Below are positions 48,464 through 64,000 of a stretch of 64,000 nt of DNA, one piece after another. Under the pieces are notes generated by a model that had not been told where the DNA came from, ran no database searches, and worked only from the letters and a program-made list of their open reading frames with translations. Location of the stretch: assembly GCA_964057225.1 (NCBI GenBank), contig OZ059896.1:11284001-11348000 (forward strand), given 5' to 3'. A program made the position numbers and the translations under genes. The stretch comes from Auanema rhodensis. Lineage: Eukaryota; Animalia; Nematoda. The first letter of the stretch is position 1. Each line of letters starts with the position of its first letter.

Positions 48464-51400
48464 ATGGGTTCTGGTCAATCACAAGAACAAAAAATTCAAG
48501 GAATGGGAAGGCTGCGAGAAGATCGTAAGTTATACCGACTTGTCGATATGCATGGTGGAGGAGAACTGATTCCTTGGTTTAGGTAAGAAATCTATATTTC
48601 AGATCAAAATAAATAAAACGATAAATATTTCTTTTTGACTATACTCTTATAATTTATTTATTTCAGATATGCTATTACAAGTGGAGACACTTCAATACTT
48701 GATGCTTATATTGACACAAAAGTTAGAGATTTCATGTACAATCAAGGCAAAGGAAAGGTCTGTACAGTTACAGAGTTAGTCAAATTGAGAAATAAGGTAA
48801 TGTATTTGAATAATAAATTATAAATATATTCCTTTTTGAGGAGAGGAACGAAAGATTAGGTGCTTTTTCACGAAAAAAAGGTAAAGGAAAAAGTGGACCA
48901 AACGTATTAGATGACTTCAATCAGGAAGGAGAAAACGTTGGTGATTTGAAGAAAGGTATCTGAATGATCATGTTGTTGATGACTGAACTAAAAATATTCA
49001 AAGCTTTGAAATTACTTGATGGAGGAGGCAAAGGTGGAAAAGGTGAATCGAAATATCGAGATATAACATGGAAACTGGATGATAGAGGTAATTGTTTAGT
49101 GTTACATTTGAAGAACTATAAGCGTTATCTTCAGGATCTATGGGTGAAACAATTATTGGAATATGTTTACTTCAAGGAACTGATATTCATAATAAATTGG
49201 CTTTGAAAATATTAGATTCATATCCTAAACTTGTTAATGACATTAATGTTTCTGAAGACTATTATGGTAAGTAATAGTTTCTTTTCTTATTAGCAAATCT
49301 AACTAAAACAAATTAAGGCTTAACTCCTTTACATCAATCAATTATTAATCAAGATGTTCAAATGGCTTATACTTTGTTAAGACGTGGAGCTGATGTCACC
49401 ACAAGGTTTCGAAGATTTTATTAAATTTATTTAATATTTATTTATGTTTATAGATGCTATGGAGCCTTCTTCTGTGCAGAAGATCAAAAAGCTACACGAA
49501 CTGATTCTTTGGAGCATGAATATGTAGAATTAAGTACAAAAACTAGCTATACTGGGTAAGCCTAAAGCTATAGCTTTTCGTAGCTTTTCCACTGAAGGAA
49601 AATACCATGTATCACTTCAGAACTATGTACTTTGGAGAATATCCTCTATCATTTGCTGCTTGTATGAATCAACCAGATTGTTATCGGCTTCTTTTAGCCA
49701 AAAAAGCGAATCCAAATGCACAAGATACAAATGGTAATACAGTGCTTCATATGTGTGTTATCCATGAAAATATGGTAAAATATCTTCATTATCTTTGACT
49801 TTTATAATACAATTTTGCAGAACATGTTCCGAGTTGCTCTTGAAAATGGAGCTAGTCTCCGTATTAGTAATAAACAAAATTTAACTGCTCTCACATTAGC
49901 TGCAAAAATGGCTAAGAAAAAGGTCTCTACTGTCATTATAAATGCTTATATTATAATTTTTTGTTTCAAGATGTTTACGGAAATTCTAGAAATTGAAGGA
50001 GAACGGGTTTGGGCATATGGTGATGCTTCATCTACAGCATATCCTTTAGCTAAAATTGATACTATTAATGAAACTACTGGAGAACTAAATGAAAACAGCG
50101 CTTTATCCTTAGTTGTATACGGAGTAAGCTTTAAATCCTCTTTTTCAATAAAAAAAACTTTTTCGATACGATATATTCTATATATTGGGTAATTTATTGA
50201 AAAATCATTCTTGTTGAACTCTCTTTATATTTTCAAATTTCTTTATTGCTTATTCATATTCAATTTGTTTGATAACCGTAGTCATAATTTTCTGTTGTCT
50301 AGGAGACACCGGAACACCTGGAACTTCTTGACGGTTTACTAGAAGAGCTGTTGGAGGAAAAGTGGAAAGCTTTCGGAAAAGCAAAGTAAGATGTTTTTCA
50401 TTCAAGACAATAATATACATATGAATATTATTGACTGTTTCCAAATATTTAAACATAAATACTGTAATCTAGGTAATGTTAGAACAATAGATGTGTTATA
50501 TTCAATCGATATATAATATTAATATTAATTAAGTATTACAAATATAAGTTGTATTTGATTACCAGAAATCAAAAAATTGGGAAAAAAGACAGAAAAAAAG
50601 AATTTTGAAGAACATATATCAGAATTTGTCAAAATACAAAGAATATCGAAAAAGTTACTTTAATACTAAAGTTTGTACAATTACTGACATAGCCATCGTA
50701 TACTTGTCTATCTGTGTCACATATCGTGCAACTAAAAAAATTTAAACCAATTTCCATTCATTGTTTTTATTTTTTTTTCAGATTGGCTCAATCAGTTCTT
50801 GCCTTTCTACTTCATTGGTGCTTAATTATTTTGGCATTTTTTCTTAGACCTATTTCATATTCAACATCGGTGAGTACATTCAGAAAGTGCAATATTCATG
50901 ATTACTTGTAAGGTTTCAACCGAAGGGTGGATTACAAAACAGGGATATGCTGCCACAAAATGGACAACAGATGATCCATTTGCACATCCTGATGATGCTG
51001 TTAAAATACCTTTGGTGCCTTTTCCAAATGGAACATATTCAGCTGTACCTTGGAGTAAGAAACTAAAATATACGTAACAATTATAATTTTCTTAATGTTA
51101 AGAATCAGAAGACGCTCAGTGTCATTTGTTAAATTACGGCAATTCAAATGATTGGGATTCACACGTTAGCTTCGAATAAATGTTTCTCTGAAAATATAGA
51201 AAGCTTTAGGTTCGTCTGACGGCGGAAGTGGGAGTGTTAATTAGTGTTATGGTCCAGTTATTCCTGGATGTTCAAGATGTCAGGTACATCGGATGGAAAA
51301 AGTGGTGGAACATCTTGGTAAGATTGAAGCAAATGATGAATAAACTAAAGATATTACAGAGAGCTTTTCCTGCAAAGATAGCCTACAAATCCTCATTTGT

Positions 51401-53031
51401 TTTCATTTTATTCACAGTTATTATACGAGCATCATGTAGATTATCACCTCATCTATTAGTTGTTGACAATATTCTTGCATGTATTACAATACTAATGACA
51501 ACAATTCATTTTCTTTTTTATTGTCGGTAAGTATTCAACAAATTCAAAAATTAAATTACTAATTATACTTTAGTGCTATTAACTTTGTTGGACCTTTTGT
51601 ATTAATGGTTTATACTATTATTGCAACAGATATACGACGATTTATTCTTATTTACGGAATATTTTTAGTTGGATTTTCTCAAGGTAATTTTAAGAATATA
51701 GGATATATTTGGGAATATTATTCTATTTTTAAGCATTTTATTTGGTATTTCTTTCTTGTGAACGTGTAAAAAATGAAGCAGATGCTTTCAATGCTTCTAC
51801 AGTTGAAGGGTTAACTCAAATCGACTTGAATCGTTTATCTCAGGTATCAAACATTGGTCTAACGTTCCAAGAGTTATTCCTTATTTCTCAGGCAAAAACA
51901 TTTGAAAATGTAATTCAAGGACCAATTGAAGCTTTCATTCGAACATTTATTCTGACCATTGGTGAATTTACTGTACTTTATCGTAACTTAGCTCTTTGCC
52001 CGGCTAACATCATGTTCTGGATTGGCAAGGTCAGTATGATTCTTGAAAGTAGCAACTAAGTGTTTCTTTAATTATTTTCAAAAAATAGTCAGAAAGTATA
52101 TAAACATTTCAGAGTGTATTCGTAATATTTGAAATGGGTGTTTCAATTCTACAATTCAATCTACTTATTGCTATGATGACAAGAACATATGAAGCTATTT
52201 TCAGAACAAAAAAAGAATATAAGAGACAAGTATCAGCTTTATTAAAGTGCTAATATAGTGTTTCTTATTTTTCAGTGGGCTCAGGTAATTCTTATGTTGG
52301 AACTTTCCCTGTCCCCTTCGGCCCGTTTAATGTATTTATTAAAATACTCAAGACCAACAGGAACAAACAAAAAAGCTCGTAGTTTGGTTGTAAATACTAA
52401 AATTACTGAGGTAACGTTATTTATTGTTTTTTATTTAGTTCAACAAATTTTTATTTTATTTTTAATATTTTGAGGCTGAGAAAAACTCGTTAGATGGTGC
52501 AGCAAAGCTTGAGGAGAAATTAAAACGAGCAGCAGAAGAGAAGAAGGCAATCATAAAATGGAAATTGAAGGTTTGTTTTTTCCTCCATTTTTCATAAAAT
52601 GATGGAAGATAATACAGTTTTATGTTCCTCTATAATATTGGATAATTAACGTAAAAATCTGAAAAAAAAACTTTTTTTCATAACAACCATATCATTTTTT
52701 CAAAGTTTGAGTTTGTGATTGTGGAAAAGAGTGGGAGAAAACGGAATATTGTGTTTCGGCTTCAGCTTCAAAACTAACTTTTTGAGTTTGGATATAAATA
52801 TTCTCTTGTTCAAAAATCGCATTATTCAGTGAGAAAATATAAATGTAGCTTGGCTATTCAAATAACTAAAACAAAAAGTGTAGTCAACCATATAAACAGA
52901 TAACTAAACTTATATTAATACAATATTAGTACACTTATATAATATATTCATTCTAGGATTTGGAGCAGAAAGAAGCAACCCGACCAACAACTTCCTTTGT
53001 AAGAACTCCACGACCTCAATCACGAAAATGA
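48464..53031 (+). CDS. TRPV channel, OCR-1/OCR-2 subgroup
   Basis: [39 protein letters not shown], ankyrin repeats ([26 protein letters not shown]), TM region, pore [21 protein letters not shown]-box-like [13 protein letters not shown]-terminal MGSGQS is myristoylation-like. Confidence 0.95.
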
Positions 53032-54057
53032 TTTTTTTTATGTTTGGAATCTATTTCTTCATGATATGCATTTTTGTTATTCATAATTCATTCATCTTAC
53101 AACTTACTCGTAATTTGAAAAAAAATATTTTGAGTTATCTAATCTATTCCAAAATTCTAGAACTAGTTTTATTTCCCAAACTCAGAATAAAACAATAATT
53201 TGATATTTATGATAACAGATGAGAATATTATAAATATAATTAAAGTTGTTCACGATTCTTAGTATTTTTACTCCGACTCAATATGACTCTATTCAATGAA
53301 ATATGAGATGACAGAGAAAGTCAAGAATTGTGAATTCAATTAGCTTTGCTCTGTTCATTGACATTAGACTTTTGAATGAAAAAAACCCCATCATCATGCC
53401 AATATATAATGAATTAAATAGTTTGCAGAAATTTCATAAAACCAGACGCAATTCAATTAGAAGTAAGCCCTCCCATATTCCATTTCTTCTCCAAGTTTTT
53501 TTTTTGAAACTCCATTTTATTAATTTTAGTCTATAGTTCTCTCACTTTTTTAAACAAAACAAGCTGAATATATTTTTAACCATATTCTTATTTTTTTTTA
53601 TGACAAATAAAAAAAATTATTTTCAAAGTTTATATCCATGTTATGGTTGTAGAAATAAACAATTCATTTCAAATATTTAATTCATTTATTCATACAATAT
53701 TCAGGAATTAGTTCAAGACTCTCAAGCTACTATATCAGATTCATATAATAACGTCAATAACTTCAGACTGTAATAAACTTCAAATACCATTATTTATTCA
53801 TTTTCTAATGAATTATTTAATATAAATTAGAATTACGTTTCAAAATTTAAAGCTATACTACAATTGATGGAATCATAAACCACTCGCATATTTAGTTCGA
53901 ATTATCACCTGTTATTCTTTTTGTTGCAATCTGCAGTATCTCATTGTCTCCATCTATTTCTCTTATTTCACATTTTGATTTAGATCACGTTCAATTTTTT
54001 CTTTTACATTCAATGCAATGGTTAAACTTTTATTTTTCAGACACATATTTAGCGAAA

Positions 54058-54519
54058 ATGTTTATTAAAACGTTAGTGGTTTGTGGCCTATTTCAATTAG
54101 TTGTTAGAACCACGGTGAGTTAGTTAGCTTTATTCGTTAGTATAGTGTATAGAGAGATACTTTTACTATTGTTCAATTTCAGTGCTATAACAATGATAAT
54201 CGGAATCCCATCGATTTTATTTCCGTAATTTTACAAAAGTTTAAACTTTAATTATTTTTATTTTTTAGTTAGATGACTCTTTCATGAAGGCAGGAATCCC
54301 TTATGAAACAATAACGGTAAAGTATTTAGTTTGTAATTCATAAATAACATTCCTATATTTAAGAAAAAATCATGCCGAGCCGGAGGTTTATGCCATGCGA
54401 ACTGCATTTGTGCTGGAAGATGCTTGGTAGGACGCTACAATTTGTCACGGAGATGTTTCATATAAATCGGCAACTCCAATGATATTTGCAAATGTTCAAG
54501 AAAATTCAAAAAAATATAG
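54058..54519 (+). CDS. Small secreted Cys-rich defensin/macin-like peptide; in-frame TAA at 54463-54465 precedes the final CxC
   Basis: Four exons: MFIKTLVVCGLFQLVVRTT/CYNNDNRNPIDFIS/LDDSFMKAGIPYETIT/KKSCRAGGLCHANCICAGRCLVGRYNLSRRCFI*IGNSNDICKCSRKFKKI*. Confidence 0.6.
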
Positions 54520-54585
54520 TATTTACCGCATAATATCATAAGTTAATAAAACTTTTATAATAAAATACTTTGACATTATTAGCAC

Positions 54586-54840
54586 TTATTCAGTATGGGT
54601 AACAATATTTATTAAACATGTTGTTTTGGATGAACTCCCTCCTTCGATAAATATTTTCTGAATCAAATCTAAAGTATCATGGCTTACAGGTACTGTAGAA
54701 AGAAACCCATTCATCATTAATGAACCTGAAAAAATTCAATTTTGTTGACACTCCGGGCTTGGAGTGAAATGGCTAACGGACATACTTATCATAAAAAGGT
54801 ATTTCGAAAAAACAAATGCGGAAAAACTAAAAACCAACAT
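54586..54840 (-). CDS. Possible 64-aa two-exon orphan peptide
   Basis: ATG at 54840; GTATGT...TTTTCAG intron 54785-54726; frame-consistent to TAA; hydrophobic N-terminus. No homology recognised. Confidence 0.25.
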
Positions 54841-55482
54841 TGTTTCAATTATTCTTAAAGAAGTTCCATAAGATTATTTTTCATATCTATTTGATATTTG
54901 TTTAAATACTTTTTACTCTACTAAAAGCAAATATTAGAACATCTTTTTTGAAAACTTATTGAAATTGGCTACTCTGTTATATCCTTATTGATACTCGTTG
55001 GTTTGTGCTTTATATCATCAAGTAAGAAAAATGCAAATGTCAAATTAAAGTTTGTCAACATTAATTAATAAATGTCAAACAAATAATTTATAGACAATTA
55101 TAATTGATAATATAATTAATTCAACATTATGCCTTTTTCAAAACGAGAGAACAGATGATCGGACCGCTGGATCTACCAAATATAACCTAATCAATATCAG
55201 GTAGACAAAAAATAGTTGGTATTCTACAGTGCCAACCCTGATTGGGCTGGCACTTATTATGCGCTCTAATACAAATAATTTCAAAAATGTATTTTTGGTC
55301 CCCAATTTGTACGCATTCGTTGAGATATATTGTGCATGCAGAGATAGCTTTCCTCTTGATTTTGTTAATAAGTCTATCATTACAGCTATATTTTTATGAT
55401 AAATGCATGATAAAATACGATAATGCTTTATATATTTATATATTGAATAAATAATTATATTATTTTAATTGAACAGATAACA

Positions 55483-57624
55483 ATGGCGGAAACCGTAACA
55501 GATAAAGGTGGACTAAAAAATAACTTAACATGCCCGATTTGTATGCTATTGTTCACTAAGGTACCGCAACTTGCTCTTATGCTGTAACAGTTTTTATTTA
55601 CAGCCTTCCATGCTTGACTGTGGTCATTCATTCTGTTCAGAATGTATAGTGTCCTGGTTAGAAAAACATGAGAATTGTCCTGTTTGTAGAAGTCCAGCCG
55701 AAAAAACTATTATTAATATTTCTTTACAAAATGTACGGTTATATTTAATCACTGTTCATATATGGATAGTTTAGGTTGTTGAAGAGCATCGGAAAAAATA
55801 TGAATGTCTATCATCTAATGAACGCTTGCCGTCATATGATAATTCTCCCGTTTGTGATGAAACTACGGACGAGGTTTTGTCGAAAAATAACAGCAATATA
55901 ATTATTATTAGTATTTTAGTCAGAAAATGATGGTGAAACTTCTAGCACTCGTTCTAGGCGTTGCAGGTTCTCTGATAAAGATGATGTTGTATATTTGAAT
56001 GAGTAAATTGTTAATGGTTTTCTTTATACAGCTTAATTTTAGTTCTAATGCCTCCTGTTTGGACACTTTACCTCGTTTATCGCCACCTCCTTTGACTGCA
56101 AGGCCAATGAGAAGTTCATTAGTTCAACCTATTATTCACGAACTCGACAGATCTATGCCTTTAAACAGGTTTTATTTGTCTATGCTAATCTTTTCTCTAT
56201 TTTTTGATTGCATTAAAGAATGGATTCGGATTCTGATTCAGTTATGTCCGAAGAAAATAAAATGCCCTTCATTAGAAAAGCAATGCAGCGACGTTCTGGT
56301 ATGGCTGAGTATTGGAATTCTTGTTTACTACTATTTTCAGCTACCTTCACCAGAACAATGGACGAGGATGATATTTCAGCAAAAGCATCTTTCAATGTAA
56401 ATTAGATTAATTTGTCAATTTTGATTTCCTGATTTTTCTGTTCTTAAGCGTAGCTCCATGTTTAGAAGGAGTATTGGAGTTATTAGGCGCAGTCGTTCAA
56501 AACGTAGGAATAACGGTAAAAATTCGTTTTCATTTCTCACATAAAGTCTAAGTCGTTTTTCAGAATCGACTCCTGTAAATATAAACGAAACTGATGTAAA
56601 TGTGAAGTCAAAGTCATTGTGGAAGCGTCTTCTCTCATTTCGCAAAAGTGCATTGAATTGTAGATTTATTTAAATTTTTATTCGTTTTAAGGAACAGTAT
56701 TTCCTACCATGAATAACGGTAAGAAGGATACAAACGTTAGTTCCCCCTTTGGGCACGTTTGCCTGTATGATGGAACAGGGAGCCTTTTCCAAAAAATTGA
56801 AGCAGGAGAAGAAATCACCATTGTTGTTTTTGGAAAAAGTGGTGTTGGCAAAACAACTTTTGTAGGTTAAATATTGTTTAATTTTAAAAAAACATTACAA
56901 AGTTGGATAACGTTGCTTTGTCTGTCGAGAAATACTTTCGGAAACATGCTCGAATGGTTGGTTTAACAGAAAGAACTATGTGGAGTGGATTGCAAATTAG
57001 CACAAGATCCTTAGCTCATATGATGACAATGGTATGTGGTGTTTAAATACAGAATAATTATCTGGTTCAGGCATTGACCACTCCAACTAAAACATACGTT
57101 ATTGATATAATAGATGCTGTCTCCTATGTAAGAATTAAATCTGATTGCTTCATATACCGTCCAATCTTCTTTTATAGGTTGAAGGATCTACTCATACTTG
57201 GGATTCCTTCATAAAAGCATCGGATGCAGCAGTATTGCTATATTCCTGTACTGATTCCTCCAGTTTATTAAATGTCATGACAGCCCATAGACATATCTCT
57301 AAACTTCTCGTAATATAGATTTTTTTACATTTTTAATTCAGTTTCTAATTTAGGGAAAACCTTGTATTCTTCTTGGTAACAACTTCTCTGAAGGTGAACG
57401 AATAGTTGAAAGTATGGGACCTAACCTCGCTCGTGATATGGGTGTCAGACATTGGGAAACAAATCTGGCCCAACCAGGTTCTGCTTCAATAGAGGTGATC
57501 TGTCTTCATATTTATAGTTCAGTATTTTTGTTTTCAGATCCTTCTATTTCTTGCTCGATCAGTGCTTGAAAAGAGAGGAGAAGATGTATCATTTATTGAC
57601 AATTTGCGTGTCGAATCTGCATGA
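55483..57624 (+). CDS. C3HC4 RING finger fused through a disordered linker to a degenerate Ras-like GTPase domain
   Basis: About 15 frame-consistent exons: CPIC...CGHSFCSECI...CPVCR; S/R/D-rich linker; IVVFGKSGVGKTTF (P-loop); IDIIDAVS; ASDAAVLLYSCTDSSSL; PCILLGNN; LARDMGVRHWETN. Confidence 0.75.
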
Positions 57625-58105
57625 ATATTATCTGGATTTGTATATGTGTGTATTCCATATAATATATTATATTTTGCTATGCTTACTCGTTTTCGAATTT
57701 TACTACTAATTAGATTTGAGGGTATTATTTCTGTATTTATATGCTGTTGCCTGCGCTTATATAGTCTGCTTCATTTGTATTTTGATAAATTTTGTAAATA
57801 TTTATATACTATTACAACTTAATGTACATAATTAGAAAAAAAAAAGATCAAAAATTCGAACGTTGCGACTGTTTTCTGATTTTTTCGAATTCTTCTTTCA
57901 GTTATTTGTTCAAAGAATCGAAGTATTGCACTTTGTTCTGTTGCATTTGAAAAGCAGCGGTTGCTATGAAACTGCATTCCCTTATTTACCGAAGAATCTT
58001 AAAAGTAGAGAGAAAAAGTTTTCTTTTGCTGTACATTGTTCGGACAAAAATCACAGGAACTGGCCAAGCTTGAAATGAAATGATAATATTGTGTCAATAC
58101 TGTTG

Positions 58106-61100
58106 ATGGAAGTTTTAACGTTTATATTATTATTTAAATATATTAACCTTATAACGGTATATTTGACCATTCTTTTCTTAATTCTTTTTTTTCTTTCTTT
58201 TAGTCTGTAAATACTGTTAATCCACCACTTGGTTGTAATAATTATGGGTATTGTCTTCCTGAAAATCAAATTACTGCCCCGTAAGTAAATCTGAAATTCT
58301 CAAAATTATTATTTTTCATCATGAAGAGTCTGAAGAACAATGTTTTTAATTCTTCAGTTTAAAACTTATTTGAATTATAGATCTGGAGAAGTAGAGTGTT
58401 CAGATTGCGTTTGCCCGTCAGGGACCATAAAGGCTTCAGCAACTGACTGTCAATGTTACACATTATTTTTGATCAGAAAAGATAATTAATAATTTTAGCT
58501 CCAACAACCTGTGCTGAAGTCACTTGTCCAACGGTAGGACAATGGAGATGTGCCCTTGTTTCTAATGAACCTACTTGTATGTGTCAAGCGGCATATGCTG
58601 CTCCATCATGCACTTTACGTAAGAATATGATTATTTAATAAAATATTTTGGATCATATTGTTTAGAAAAATCTGATCCTTGTTCATCTATTCCTTGCTTG
58701 AACCGAGGAAAGTGTACAGGGACAACAAGTTATAAATGCGAATGTGATGTTGGGACATATGGAGAGCAATGCCAATGTATCTTTATAAATGTTATGCTGC
58801 TGAAGCAACTTAGGTTTTCATTTTAGACGAACCTGATCCCTGTCTAGATAAATGTAAAAATGGCGGAATTTGTGAAATCATTGATAGGCAACGAGTAGCT
58901 TTATGTAAATGTCCTGTTGGATATGTTGGAATTAATTGTGAAACAGCAGAAACACGTAATTATACAGAAAAAAACTTTATCACTTTCTTTTTGTTAGCAA
59001 CGTCTTCATTCGTTGGATGTTATGGTCAAACTTATGTGTTTTCTACTCCCCAATATTTCTTGTACACCGGATCAGTTACAAATGGAAAAGATTGTGTAAA
59101 TGCTCTTTTGCAGTATTTGAAAACAAATCCACAGGTTAATTATCGGTTTTCCAGTAAGATCTGAGTATAGTATTCGATTTGATTATATTATTTTAGCGTA
59201 TTATGCAAGAACTAAGGAATGTTGGTTTTCTGAGATCAATCATTTAACTCAACTATTTGTTGCTGATAATCTTTTAGATCTTCTTTTACAAGCACGTAAG
59301 TAGCCATTTTATAATGGATCTTAAAAACTATTGTATATCATGATTAAAAATACTCCAGTTCTTGTTCAATGTCCTACAGCTAATAACTTGGATCCTGGCA
59401 TGCAACCTGTATATGAAGTTAAAAGTATAACATTTGTTTTCTTACTTGTAACAAATATTTAAATATAATATATAGCTGAATGTGACAAATATAATAAATG
59501 CTCATCAAATGGATATTGTTATAACACTGTCGGAGCTTCAACTGGATGTGTTTGTAATAAGGGGTATTCTGGATCAACTTGTACAACAGGTAATGGTGTT
59601 AGTTTACAAATTTAATAATATTCTTCTCTCTAGTTGATAACAGTGATCCTTGTAAAACAAAAAGTTGTGGGATTGGCTCATGTAAAGTTACTGATGATGG
59701 AACTGCTGCTTACTGTATTTGTCCTAATGGAGATGTAAAGATGGACACATGTGGTAAGTTGCTAAAGATGCACTATGAGGAACATCTTAATGAATATGTT
59801 TGTTTTGTTTGTATATGTTTTTTGATATTTAGGAGTTGATTCTTGTTCCCCAAATCCTTGTCAGTATGGTGGAACATGTGAAAATACACCTACAGGATAT
59901 ACTTGCAACTGTTTGAATCTGTACACTGGTCTTATATGTTCCGGTATAAGGAAATAGAAAAATTATAAACAAAGTTAATAATTTAGATTTTAACGCTTGC
60001 TATGAAAACAAATGTTTAAATGGGGGAGCATGCAAAAATATTCCAAATGGTTTATCCAGTACATACAGCTGTGATTGTTTACCAGGCTTCATTGGAGATA
60101 ATTGTGAAACAGGTCTGTTCCCTCGAGTAATATGAAAATTAAAAAAAAAAGTATGAAATTTCCATTCCTATAGATTGCAAAATTTTTGTAGTGCTCGATA
60201 TAATAAAATGAAATTTTTTTAAACTCTTTACAGTTGAATGATGTTCAACTTTTCAGCTAGAAATTGCTGAGAAACCCCACAGTTCTCTCATTTCTTTCAA
60301 TCTCTGCAATTGCTCGCAGTATTTTTCGCTAATCCTGATATAAAAAAATTATCCAGCAGTCGGAAATAACTACATTACCCTCCTTTATCGAATGTGTTAT
60401 ATAATCTTTAAGCATGAAACCCCCCCCCCCCTGTTTTCTACCGTATAAAGAAAACATTCTTTGTTTTTCTACACATCCCACCTGATATCCAAATGGCACC
60501 CACTACTCTACCCATATTATACTACCTTCTAGCAACAACTGTTTCATCTATTTCAACGGTCATTCTTGATCCTCCAACCTTTTCCGAACGTTTCAAAAGC
60601 TTATACGTAAAAGTTTCTCTTAAAAAGTTCGTCCAAATTTTTTCAATTTTTAGATTTTTCTAACAATTTTTCCAAGACAATAATTCGTTTACTCAGAGAT
60701 AGATGAATATAATTACTGTAGAATACAGTAAATGTGAACCTAAAAGTTGTTTATTCTTTTTCTTTTATGTTCAACTACCTTCTAGGAATTTTCCCTTTTT
60801 AAACAAATATTCAAAAAAAAACATATTCTGAGTGTTCCAAAACGATAATGAATTTAAAAACATTTTAAAACAATCAATTAATCATGTTTAAAAGTGTTTT
60901 CCGGGGTTTCCGAAATAAACTTTATCCTTCAGAGAGCGCTCCAAAGACCTGAATACATGATAATCAGCTGGAGCTAAGTCTGGAGAACATGGTGGACGTT
61001 CCATAACATCCAACCAAGTTCATCCAGCTTCTCTCTGGTAGTGCGGCTCGCATGAGGTCACGCATTGTTTTGCAAAAGCACCACTTTCTTTCTTTTTCTT

Positions 61101-63593
61101 CCCTCTTTAATATCCACATTCAAACTCTGCAATTGCTTACAGTAATTTTCGATATCTACAGTCTTACCATATATGAGCAGCTCTAGGTGTAGAAATCCAT
61201 CGTAACCTCAAAAAACGCAACACAAAACCTTTTTAGGGGTTAATATGGAGTTCTTTGGGGTACTCTTGATCTGAGATTGCTCTTAGTCATGAATTTTATT
61301 TTAGGAAAAAGGTAAAATCTTTTGGAATTTACTCATATTTTTTAGCCGATTCGAAATATCAAGATAACATTATCATAAAATTTTGAGAATTTTGCGGGAG
61401 GGGCCGCGAAACAAGTTCGAGACCTAATATATACATATATTCTTATTTATATAATATACATATCCACAATAATAGTTCAGATGTTTGTCAAAAAATAATT
61501 TTAAAATGAAAATTTCCAACTCAAAGTGTTACAGAATATCTTAGCGTTCTAAAGCCTAAAACACATGTGTCTTGAATTCGTTCTTGCCAACTTTCTTTGT
61601 GTTCTAGAAATATTTGCTTGTGACACTGTCGTCTGTGAAAATAATGGAGTTTGCAAAAATGGACCAAGCTTCACATATACATGTGAATGTACACAATTCT
61701 TCAGAGGTGTAAACTGCGAAATTGGTCAGTTTCCCCCGAATAATATTATTTATAATAAAATTATTTTTTTAGATATTGATGAATGTCTAGAAAATCCAAC
61801 ATTATGTACAACAAAAGATTCAACAGCTAAATGTATTAATACATTTGGTGGATATGAATGCCAATGTAGTGATATATGGTTAGGCACCAAATGCACAATA
61901 AGTTGATTAAAAACAGGAAAAATAAAATTAATTTTCTTTATATCTTTAGATAAAATTATATATGATATATTGGAAAGTACACATGGTAATGTTCTTCCTG
62001 AAGAACTAAATAAAGTAATAATTACTAATCTATTTGAAAAAATAAAAGGATTTTTCAGCTAACAGAAGACTTAATGAGTGATCCAACCATTGTCAGAGAT
62101 ATTATTCCTTTTCTGATTGGTGGATACCCATTAGATGTACGAATGGACTTAAGTTGGGATTATGATGACATCTTTATCTGGGTAGCGTATGAGGAAAAAC
62201 TGATAGATGTAAGGTATGATATAACTATATAAACTTTTATTTTTTTTTATTTTCAAAAATGTATAGTAAATACAAGTAAATTATGATTTTAGAACTGATT
62301 TTGTTCGTTGGAATGATAAAGTACTTGGAAACTGTTTCACATTCAATCATATGAATAGCTCTTTACTGTATAAAGGAAGAGGATCTGGTGTATCTGGAGG
62401 TTTGTCATCGTAATGTATCTCGAATTTCACTCAAATATGCTAGCGCAGAATAGTCATCAAAGATCTTTTGATATAAGAAAACCATAGTGACCATAAATAA
62501 TTAAATGAAAGGAGAAGAAATATAATGCTTGTTATAAAAAAAATTCAATTCAGGATTGGAACTACAGACGAATGTTCAACAAAAAGAATATTTGCCTTGG
62601 ATTGAAACGGCTGCAATTCTTGTATTCACTCACAATTGGGATGAATCTATTTTTGCCGAATCACCTAGAATCAATTGCAGACCTAATAATTTAGTTCAAA
62701 TGAATGTTCAACCAGTATTAATAGTTATATAAGTTATAATATAATATAATTTCGAATTCTAGATATATTATGAACGACTGGGGGGACGTTTTGGAAAATG
62801 TGTGAAGAAGATCAGTGAAGTTACATCTTATTATTATGGTGGATCATACACAACCGATGTACGATATTTGTAATAATAGATTTATGTTATTAACCACATT
62901 AGGGATGTTTACGATCCTGTTATCAAGATGTGATCAAAAATGAATGTGGTTGTATGGATCCAAGATATCCTGCTCCAGAAGATGAAGAATCATGCTCTCT
63001 TGCCAACAGTTTGAAAAACCGTAATACATTTGTATAGTTAATCTAATGTATTTGAGGATTATGTATTGAATCAGCATCAAATAGATTAGGAGATCCATCA
63101 AAATGGAAACAATGCAATTGTCCTTTACCTTGCTCAAATACAATTTACAATGTTGCTTTTTCTGAAACTAGTTACAAATCAAAGGTTTCTCATATCTGAT
63201 TTTTTCAAAAAATATAGAAGATTATAGAAAACAGCTTGTGAATTAAAGAGAGGAAAACTTCGTGATGAATGTTATGAACAGGAAGAAGATAAAGTTCTTC
63301 TGAGAACATCCATGCCATCATTAATCATTTTTGGTTTCATTGAAACCGAAGCTTTTGGGGTCAGTAAACAAGTAATAGTCTTCAGTAAAATTTCTATTTT
63401 ACAGCTTACTTCTTTCTTATCACGATTAGGAGGTCTTCTTGGTATTTTGATGGGTATATCTGCTATTTGTTTAATTGAATTCATTTTCTTAATATCACAA
63501 TTGATTTTTATATTTTGTTCGAATACAAAATTTACAGCACCGTTGTCCAAAAATCGATCGGGCATACGAAATTCAAAAGCCATGAAATGGTAA
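58106..63593 (+). CDS. EGF-repeat plus DEG/ENaC (ASC) domain protein, EGAS type
   Basis: Signal peptide; 10 EGF modules (the last Ca-binding, DIDEC); WSC-like insert; ASC motifs [41 protein letters not shown]; TM2 [18 protein letters not shown]. Confidence 0.9.
60348..60640 (-). mobile_element. Degenerate Merlin (IS1595/ISXO2-like) transposase fragment inside an egas intron
   Basis: WTNFLRE...[31 protein letters not shown]...[12 protein letters not shown] fits the VEIDE / KYNRGR / WVFGG / IxSDxW motifs; contains stop codons. Confidence 0.8.
60903..61118 (-). mobile_element. Degenerate mariner (DD34D) transposase fragment inside an egas intron
   Basis: [24 protein letters not shown](frameshift)[19 protein letters not shown] fits the mariner pattern HDNAxPH...LGW...HPPYSPDLAPSDYHLFRSL. 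Confidence 0.85.
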
Positions 63594-63748
63594 ATTTAAA
63601 ATATTTCTGCAAATTATTATTGAAATAAATATTAATCGTATCTCTTTAACTTATTTCAAATAGAATTAATGATATGTACTGCTTGTTAATAATAAATTAT
63701 ATTTAAAAAAAAGTTCTCTGAATTTATAAAATAATATAACTTATTAAA

Positions 63749-63992
63749 TTATAAATAAAATAAAGCAAAAATAAGCATTGAAACAACTCCCATTAGTATA
63801 ATACATATAATTGTCCATAAAAATTGTGCAAAACCACCACAACAGATATCACAGCAAATTGAAGTTTGTCTATCTTTGCGTGTATAAAGTTTTTGAGATT
63901 GAAATGGGATATTTGATGATGGACCAACAGGAAAATAAACAGGAGGACCGGGTGCTGATGGAAACCAAACCGGGACTGGAACTTCAGCAAAT
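63749..63992 (-). CDS. Last exon of a Pro-rich, Cys-cluster tail-anchored membrane protein (gene continues beyond the window)
   Basis: In a frame not shown in the ORF track: FAEVPVPVWFPSAPGPP...ICCDICCGGFAQFLWTIICIILMGVVSMLIFALFYL*, preceded by an AAG acceptor. Confidence 0.6.
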
Positions 63993-64000
63993 CTTCAATG

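Follow-up and report, generated by a model that had tools for sequence, protein, structure and literature searches.

A clade V nematode gene that joins a RING finger to a Ras-derived domain, most likely a pseudoGTPase

Does a single gene of the nematode Auanema rhodensis encode both a ubiquitin ligase (E3) and a small GTPase-like protein, and, if it does, would the GTPase-like half still work as a switch? The question is raised by a locus at positions 55483-57624, on the + strand, of the stretch of contig OZ059896.1 analysed here, a 64,000-nucleotide (nt) piece of AT-rich DNA (GC about 0.30) which we call the window. The original prediction for this locus, made from the letters alone, was of a RING E3 ligase fused to a Ras-like pseudo-GTPase. 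We compared the locus with related nematode genes, and in our assessment, with a probability of roughly 0.6, it is a single gene of clade V (Rhabditina) nematodes, coding for a RING-type E3 of 505 amino acids with a Ras-derived, most likely pseudoGTPase, C-terminal half.

Gene structure and evidence for a single gene

Reading of the three forward frames gives a gene of 15 exons whose 505-amino-acid product consists of an N-terminal C3HC4 RING, an S/R/D-rich linker of about 225 residues and a C-terminal Ras-family domain. The start codon (ATG 55483) and the stop codon (TGA 57622-57624) lie where they had been placed before, and all 14 introns are of the GT..AG type with lengths of 39-52 nt. The continuous spliced frame that had been claimed for the locus, with its 505 open codons, holds only if the donor of exon 9 is that at 56647|56648 (AAAA|GTGCAT), which gives an intron 9 of 44 nt. 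A donor at 56659 was considered for the same exon and rejected, as it brings in an in-frame TGA and leaves an intron of only 32 nt.

Intron 9 (56648..56691) decides between one gene and two. The main risk for the model is a two-gene reading, because nematodes have operons and because a further ATG, at 56709, follows the exon 10 acceptor by 17 nt. Exon 10 (56692..56861) carries conserved V-F-P-T codons, this internal ATG, the first strand of the G domain and the P-loop GKSGVGKT (56832-56855). We searched exon 10 alone against 1.84 billion representative proteins in a full scan. The search returned an unnamed product of Auanema sp. JU1783 (P0001, 505 amino acids), matched at residues 269-324, where our gene model places exon 10 at residues 268-324, and the Necator americanus protein RB195_003543 (P0002, 546 amino acids), matched at residues 317-366.

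The two Auanema genes were also compared as DNA. The window gene aligns exon for exon with the Auanema sp. JU1783 locus (L004), which has the same 15 exons, and about 15 kb around the gene (48.5-64 kb) are collinear with the contig of that species, so the two genes are positional orthologues. The intron 9 donor of Auanema sp. JU1783 (AAGA|GTAGGT) sits at the same nucleotide position, while the intron itself is unalignable (32% identical). The V, F and P codons that stand between the exon 10 acceptor and ATG 56709 show third-position differences only between the two species, and an in-frame TAA lies just upstream of that acceptor. Synonymous-only change downstream of a stop indicates constraint at the protein level on codons that are translated only after cis-splicing from exon 9.

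In concordance with this, the equivalent intron of Necator has phase 1 and lies two codons downstream, with no ATG from there to the P-loop, and the Haemonchus protein has no Met before the P-loop either. A stand-alone G-domain gene would thus be without a start codon in these species. The exon 10 search, the shared exon plan of Auanema sp. JU1783 and the strongylids without this Met together bear out the proposal that RING, linker and Ras-fold domain belong to one gene.

RING, linker and Ras-like domain

The RING is encoded by the first two exons. Exon 1 (55483..55560), preceded by an acceptor (ttgaacag) 6 nt upstream of its ATG, contributes the start codon and the first two RING cysteines (CPIC, from 55531), and exon 2 (55604..55732) the remainder of the C3HC4 pattern (C-G-H, C-x2-C and C-P-V-C-R, ending at 55690). 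Exon 2 alone matches the Pfam families zf-C3HC4 (E 9e-10), zf-C3HC4_2 and zf-RING_2, all with E about 1e-9 and above the cut-offs, and the eight metal ligands of the two exons read C-x2-C-x11-C-x-H-x2-C-x2-C-x10-C-x2-C; the N-terminal C3HC4 RING of the original prediction is thereby upheld. The domain has residues of the type that contacts the ubiquitin-conjugating enzyme (E2): an Ile follows the first Cys and an Arg the last, a Trp stands in ..SWL.. and a Pro in CPVC, and the family profile aligns these positions with the RING of RNF8. RING E3s use such positions to bind and activate E2~ubiquitin. Since the residues that hold and activate E2~ubiquitin are kept, the RING probably transfers ubiquitin.

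The linker follows on exons 3 to 9. Exon 3 (55775..55873) encodes a post-RING helix (VVEEH..) and the linker start; exon 4 (55920..56002), with 96% amino acid identity to Auanema sp. JU1783, contains the family-conserved RRxRFS; exons 5 (56043..56168), 6 (56219..56298) and 7 (56341..56396) continue the linker; exon 8 (56449..56515) has the conserved basic motif ..S-x-F-R-R-S-I-G-x-I-R-R-S..; and exon 9 (56564..56647) has the conserved KS-x-WKR-L-x-x-F-R/K. The composition of about residues 70-295 (S 33, R 26 and D 19 of 225 residues) agrees with the earlier description of a linker rich in S, R and D. In the AlphaFold2 model of P0001 the linker is disordered and S/R-rich. The motifs common to the family are RRxRFS, F-x-R-x-S-x-x-RRS-x-x-x-I-R-x-S and KS-x-WKR-x-x-x-F. 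As the linker retains 85% amino acid identity to Auanema sp. JU1783 at saturated synonymous sites, it is no spacer under relaxed constraint.

The family and the fold of the C-terminal half were determined on the orthologue P0001, whose identity to the window protein is 87% overall and 89% over the G domain. Single G-domain exons of the window gene give noise-level Pfam matches only (Ras with E 0.19 for exon 13, P-loop families with E 0.03-0.2 for exon 10), and a single-exon search of the Atlas gave a weak Ras lead. The orthologues match PF00071 (Ras) with 28.3 bits (P0001) and 42.4 bits (P0002), the Pfam cut-off being 21.6. Against solved structures, a nine-member family profile finds M-Ras best (8e-13), then R-Ras2, RERG and Ras, and a Dictyocaulus model that lacks the RING returns the same order, followed by Rheb, over a span from strand 3 to helix 5. 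The C-terminal half would therefore be a diverged domain of the Ras subfamily proper. The suggestion that it is RGK-like was not sustained, no RGK protein being among the PDB matches listed, which are led by M-Ras, R-Ras2, RERG and Rheb.

The AlphaFold2 model of P0001 shows a G domain with the Ras order of strands and helices, in which the hairpin of strands 2 and 3 is extended and of low confidence. In Foldseek, this model superposes on Rab8, Ran, KRAS, Cdc42 and M-Ras, with template-modelling (TM) scores of 0.6-0.74 by target, and the Atlas's own model reaches TM 0.66-0.75 to Ras clusters. The structure search thus leads to small GTPases, as the proposed G-domain fold would have it.

We assigned the nucleotide-binding motifs by a HMMER alignment of an orthologue to M-Ras, carried to the window protein through the family alignment A1. 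The G1 P-loop on exon 10 (GKSGVGKT) agrees with the canonical GxxxxGK(S/T), and its GVGKT is invariant across all family sequences. Exon 11 (56903..57031) encodes helix 1, a candidate switch I (GLTER) and the start of the hairpin extension of about 20 residues; the conserved GLTER may supply the switch I Thr. Exon 12 (57071..57127) follows with strand 3 and the degenerate G3, which is DAVS in the window protein (57113-57124), DAEF in the strongylid orthologues and DTAG in canonical GTPases. Exon 13 (57178..57309), the one with the weak Pfam Ras match, holds helix 2, strand 4 and helix 3. Strand 5, helix 4 and strand 6 are on exon 14 (57354..57494), together with G4 and G5: the former is NNFS (57378-57389) against NV.. 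in strongylids and a canonical NKxD, the latter ETNL (57456-57467) against E(T/A)(N/D)L in strongylids and a canonical ETSA. Exon 15 (57538..57624) encodes helix 5, a tail without CaaX and the TGA stop. The P-loop, DAVS and ETNL had been positioned correctly from the letters alone, while G4, first given as GNNF, is better read as NNFS.

The degeneracy of G3, G4 and G5 beside an intact P-loop, already remarked on in the window gene, is a property of the family and not of this copy alone. Family-wide, the patterns are DA(E/V)(F/S) for G3, N(V/N)xx for G4 and E(T/A)(N/S/D)L for G5. No member of the family has the glycine of G3, the catalytic Gln, the Ala of SAK or the Lys and Asp of NKxD, and in the motif alignment to M-Ras there is no equivalent of Gln-61, whereas all members retain GVGKT, the Asp of strand 3 and the G4 Asn. 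The position of Gly-12 is occupied by Ser in the window protein and by Arg in strongylids; such a change blocks hydrolysis in Ras. An invariant GVGKT combined with degenerate G3, G4 and G5 motifs in every member makes it likely that the Ras-like domain is a conserved pseudoGTPase, and because the losses are ancient and common to the family they point to a stable pseudoGTPase state rather than to decay. The description of the domain as catalytically dead or of altered specificity is, on these motifs, a reasonable inference.

Distribution, selection and probable loss of the CaaX tail

Fused orthologues are deposited for Auanema sp. JU1783, Haemonchus, Necator and Heterorhabditis. Besides P0001 and P0002, they include Haemonchus contortus CDJ82026.1 (P0013; V3C99_006840), deposited as 'Zinc finger and Ras domain containing protein', and A0A1I7XIF5 of Heterorhabditis bacteriophora (P0014). 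Further members come from Haemonchus placei, Dictyocaulus, Ancylostoma, Parelaphostrongylus and Angiostrongylus, and the models in other strongylids are partial. Like the window protein, P0001, P0002, P0013 and P0014 run from a RING through a basic S/R-rich linker to a Ras-family domain, and they have in common with it the linker motifs, GVGKT and the degenerate G3, G4 and G5. The full-length strongylid models differ from it in being 40-50 amino acids longer at the N terminus, and strongylids have DAEF in place of DAVS at G3. The window gene thus adds no new architecture and is a member of an existing database family, which reduces the novelty that had been considered for it. Our literature searches for the architecture or for the database name found no paper on the family, and the deposited orthologues appear to be uncharacterised.

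Strong purifying selection acts on the entire gene. The 504 codons compared with Auanema sp. JU1783 encode 87% identical amino acids, against saturated synonymous sites (proportion of synonymous differences, pS, about 0.8) and introns that are 32-53% identical in nucleotides. By region, identity is 90% in the RING, 85% in the linker and 89% in the G domain. The most constrained part of the gene is that of exons 11-12 (56903-57127), where the two proteins do not differ at any of the 62 codons (100% identity). This part takes in helix 1, the candidate switch I and the hairpin of strands 2 and 3 up to G3, and with them the effector-side face of the Ras-like domain.

The C terminus sets the Auanema proteins apart. 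All three strongylid models whose C terminus is complete end in CaaX, of the farnesylation type found in Ras: CSLM in Haemonchus P0013, CTVM in Necator P0002 and CSIM in the Dictyocaulus model P0005. The window protein ends ..RVESA without a CaaX, as had been noted from its sequence, and the tails of both Auanema proteins have the same length as the strongylid tails and contain no cysteine. This suggests that the ancestral protein was probably membrane-anchored and that the Auanema-side lineage lost the anchor.

All members found belong to Rhabditina. The exon 10 scan of representative proteins, which caught Necator at 48% identity, gave no match from Caenorhabditis, although no search was dedicated to that genus or to nematodes outside clade V; this is weak evidence that the family is absent or more diverged there. 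Word-index protein searches with P0001 and with the profile A1 returned three family members, most of the matches listed being TRIM proteins with a RING only. These searches missed Necator P0002 and three other members, even though all four are in the collection and in the rows of the query alignment, and so their blanks cannot be used to argue for absence or for a taxonomic range. No paralogue of exon 14 was found in the A. rhodensis genome itself.

We made further observations on the surroundings of the gene and on the genome. The block collinear with Auanema sp. JU1783 runs from 48482 to 63994 of the window (L004:1-13166) and includes an ankyrin-repeat gene upstream (~48.5-53.0 kb), a small gene at 54343-54465 and genes downstream. 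Because the exons of one downstream Auanema sp. JU1783 gene (L004 ~9.9-10.9 kb) match two places of the window, 59475-60117 and 61592-61923, a local tandem duplication or a pair of paralogues is suggested at these positions. In the 181-Mb assembly, the 22-nt spliced leader SL1 is present in 3451 copies (up to one mismatch), which form long tandem arrays with periods of ~252 bp and ~341 bp, for instance at G000:C3:6741531-6766485 (L002) and from C3:14134320 onward (L003); C. elegans has far fewer copies, roughly 110. The first 1600 bases of L002, which reach no further than the edge of an array, gave no Rfam match at the gathering threshold.

Alternative readings and functional implications

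The locus could be read differently. If it consisted of two adjacent operon genes, a RING protein would end at TAA 56671 and a GTPase-like protein would start at ATG 56709 after a spliced-leader site at 56691/2, and the predictors would have fused the two in every species. Unspliced exon 9 does run into the stop at 56671-56673, an ATG shared with Auanema sp. JU1783 stands 17 nt past the acceptor ttttaag|G, and SL1 is heavily used in the genome. Nevertheless, we regard two genes as very improbable. The gap from stop to acceptor measures just 18 nt and has none of seven polyA-signal hexamers searched for, which are likewise lacking from the whole of 56601-56700; the codons upstream of ATG 56709 are conserved as protein, with synonymous differences only, and the strongylids, in which no Met precedes the P-loop, retain V-(H/F)-P-(S/T); the donor position of intron 9 is conserved and the length of this intron is typical for the gene; and three deposited Haemonchus proteins (549, 549 and 554 amino acids) share one 90%-identity cluster with the fused P0013. 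Even less credence is due to a decaying or chimeric locus, either a pseudogene or a recent exon-shuffling accident without function as a unit. The degenerate guanine-binding motifs and the missing CaaX of the strongylid orthologues would fit such a history, but the frame is intact over 15 exons, the protein, linker included, is conserved against saturated synonymous change, and the same degenerate motifs recur in distant genera.

More weight, while still on the unlikely side, is given to a working nucleoside triphosphatase (NTPase) switch with unconventional motifs, either ATP-/XTP-specific or fast-cycling, by which the ligase would be regulated by nucleotide as in TRIM23. The retention of GVGKT, the strand-3 Asp and the G4 Asn in every member, and the complete identity of exons 11-12 around the candidate switch I, speak for this. 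The family-wide loss of the G3 glycine, catalytic Gln, NKxD Lys and Asp and SAK Ala, together with Ser or Arg in place of Gly-12, speaks against it. Several points also count against our preferred reading of one gene with a pseudoGTPase half. The fusion rests on comparative genomics and on gene models of other groups; the Met at the start of the G domain is kept in both Auanema species, and there may be an additional, internally trans-spliced isoform with the G domain only; the evidence for the family and fold of this domain comes from P0001 and not from the window protein itself; the confidence of the P0001 model (predicted local distance difference test, pLDDT) is low, with a mean of 41.5 and 55-74 in the G domain, from an alignment of 9 sequences; and an invariant P-loop could equally fit a working, unusual NTPase. 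A poor overall pLDDT is expected, since half of the protein is disordered and the alignment has only 9 rows.

Compared with known systems, a RING E3 and a C-terminal domain of small-GTPase fold in one chain are also found in TRIM23/ARD1, which is described as the sole TRIM with both E3 ligase and GTPase activity (PMC12075517). TRIM23/ARD1 is built from a RING, B-boxes, a coiled coil and an ARF domain, whereas Pfam finds no B-box (PF00643) in P0001 or P0002 and no coiled-coil family among their matches. The G domain here also differs in being Ras and not Arf by Pfam, with M-Ras and R-Ras2 as the best PDB matches, and in its degenerate G motifs. RNF112/ZNF179 likewise combines a RING with a GTP-binding domain, which belongs to the dynamin superfamily (PMC12012479). 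The G domain of the window family is instead a Ras fold of roughly 200 amino acids with no GBP/dynamin-like Pfam match. Thus, the assertion that the architecture corresponds to neither TRIM23 nor RNF112 stands, as Pfam on P0001 and P0002 finds no B-box, no ARF and no GBP/dynamin-like domain.

A small-GTPase-like domain coupled in one chain to the ubiquitin machinery is a feature also of Rab40, a Rab with a SOCS box, and of RhoBTB, a Rho-like domain with a BTB whose G domain is atypical as well. These proteins carry adaptor modules that recruit cullin ligases, whereas in the window family it is the catalytic RING that is joined to the G domain, on its N-terminal side. M-Ras, R-Ras2/TC21, RERG and Rheb, the best sequence matches among solved structures, have the CaaX tail in common with the strongylid members; they differ in having no RING, in their canonical DTAGQ, NKxD and SAK, and in a strand 2-3 hairpin that is about 20 amino acids shorter. 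In mode of action, the window protein would come closest to the small group of GTPase-coupled ubiquitin machinery proteins formed by TRIM23, Rab40 and RhoBTB.

On the reading of a single gene with a pseudoGTPase half, the Ras-like domain, in which the phosphate-binding P-loop, the Asp of strand 3 and a candidate Thr of switch I are retained, may hold nucleotide, would probably not cycle by hydrolysis, and would have weak or changed base specificity. It could then serve the RING as a fixed module for docking, localisation or regulation, through which partners are brought in, with the invariant effector-side surface of exons 11-12 as the likely binding face. The C-terminal CaaX of the three full-length strongylid models would tether the protein to membranes like Ras, an anchor presumably lost in the lineage of the window gene. 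A more specific proposal, which we offer tentatively and think rather doubtful, is that clade V nematodes alone have a class of E3 not described before: a Ras-decoy ligase, whose Ras-derived domain would be locked into a single nucleotide state, or be free of nucleotide, and would present an effector-like surface that recruits partners of the Ras pathway to the RING at the membrane.

Few proteins combine a ubiquitin-ligase module with a small-GTPase fold, among them TRIM23, RNF112, Rab40 and RhoBTB, and each of these four has been informative on how nucleotide state and ubiquitination are coupled. Here, a catalytic RING appears directly fused to a Ras-subfamily domain that has kept its P-loop and lost the residues for guanine specificity and catalysis. 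If Caenorhabditis is truly without the family, the lack of a copy in the model worm would explain why it went unnoticed. The value of the window gene is that of a clean, well-supported member, and of evidence that one lineage can dispense with the CaaX anchor. Members occur in the free-living, genetically tractable Auanema as well as in major strongylid parasites (Haemonchus, Necator and Ancylostoma), and this occurrence makes the family, possibly a nematode-specific regulator, a testable case of pseudoGTPase function.

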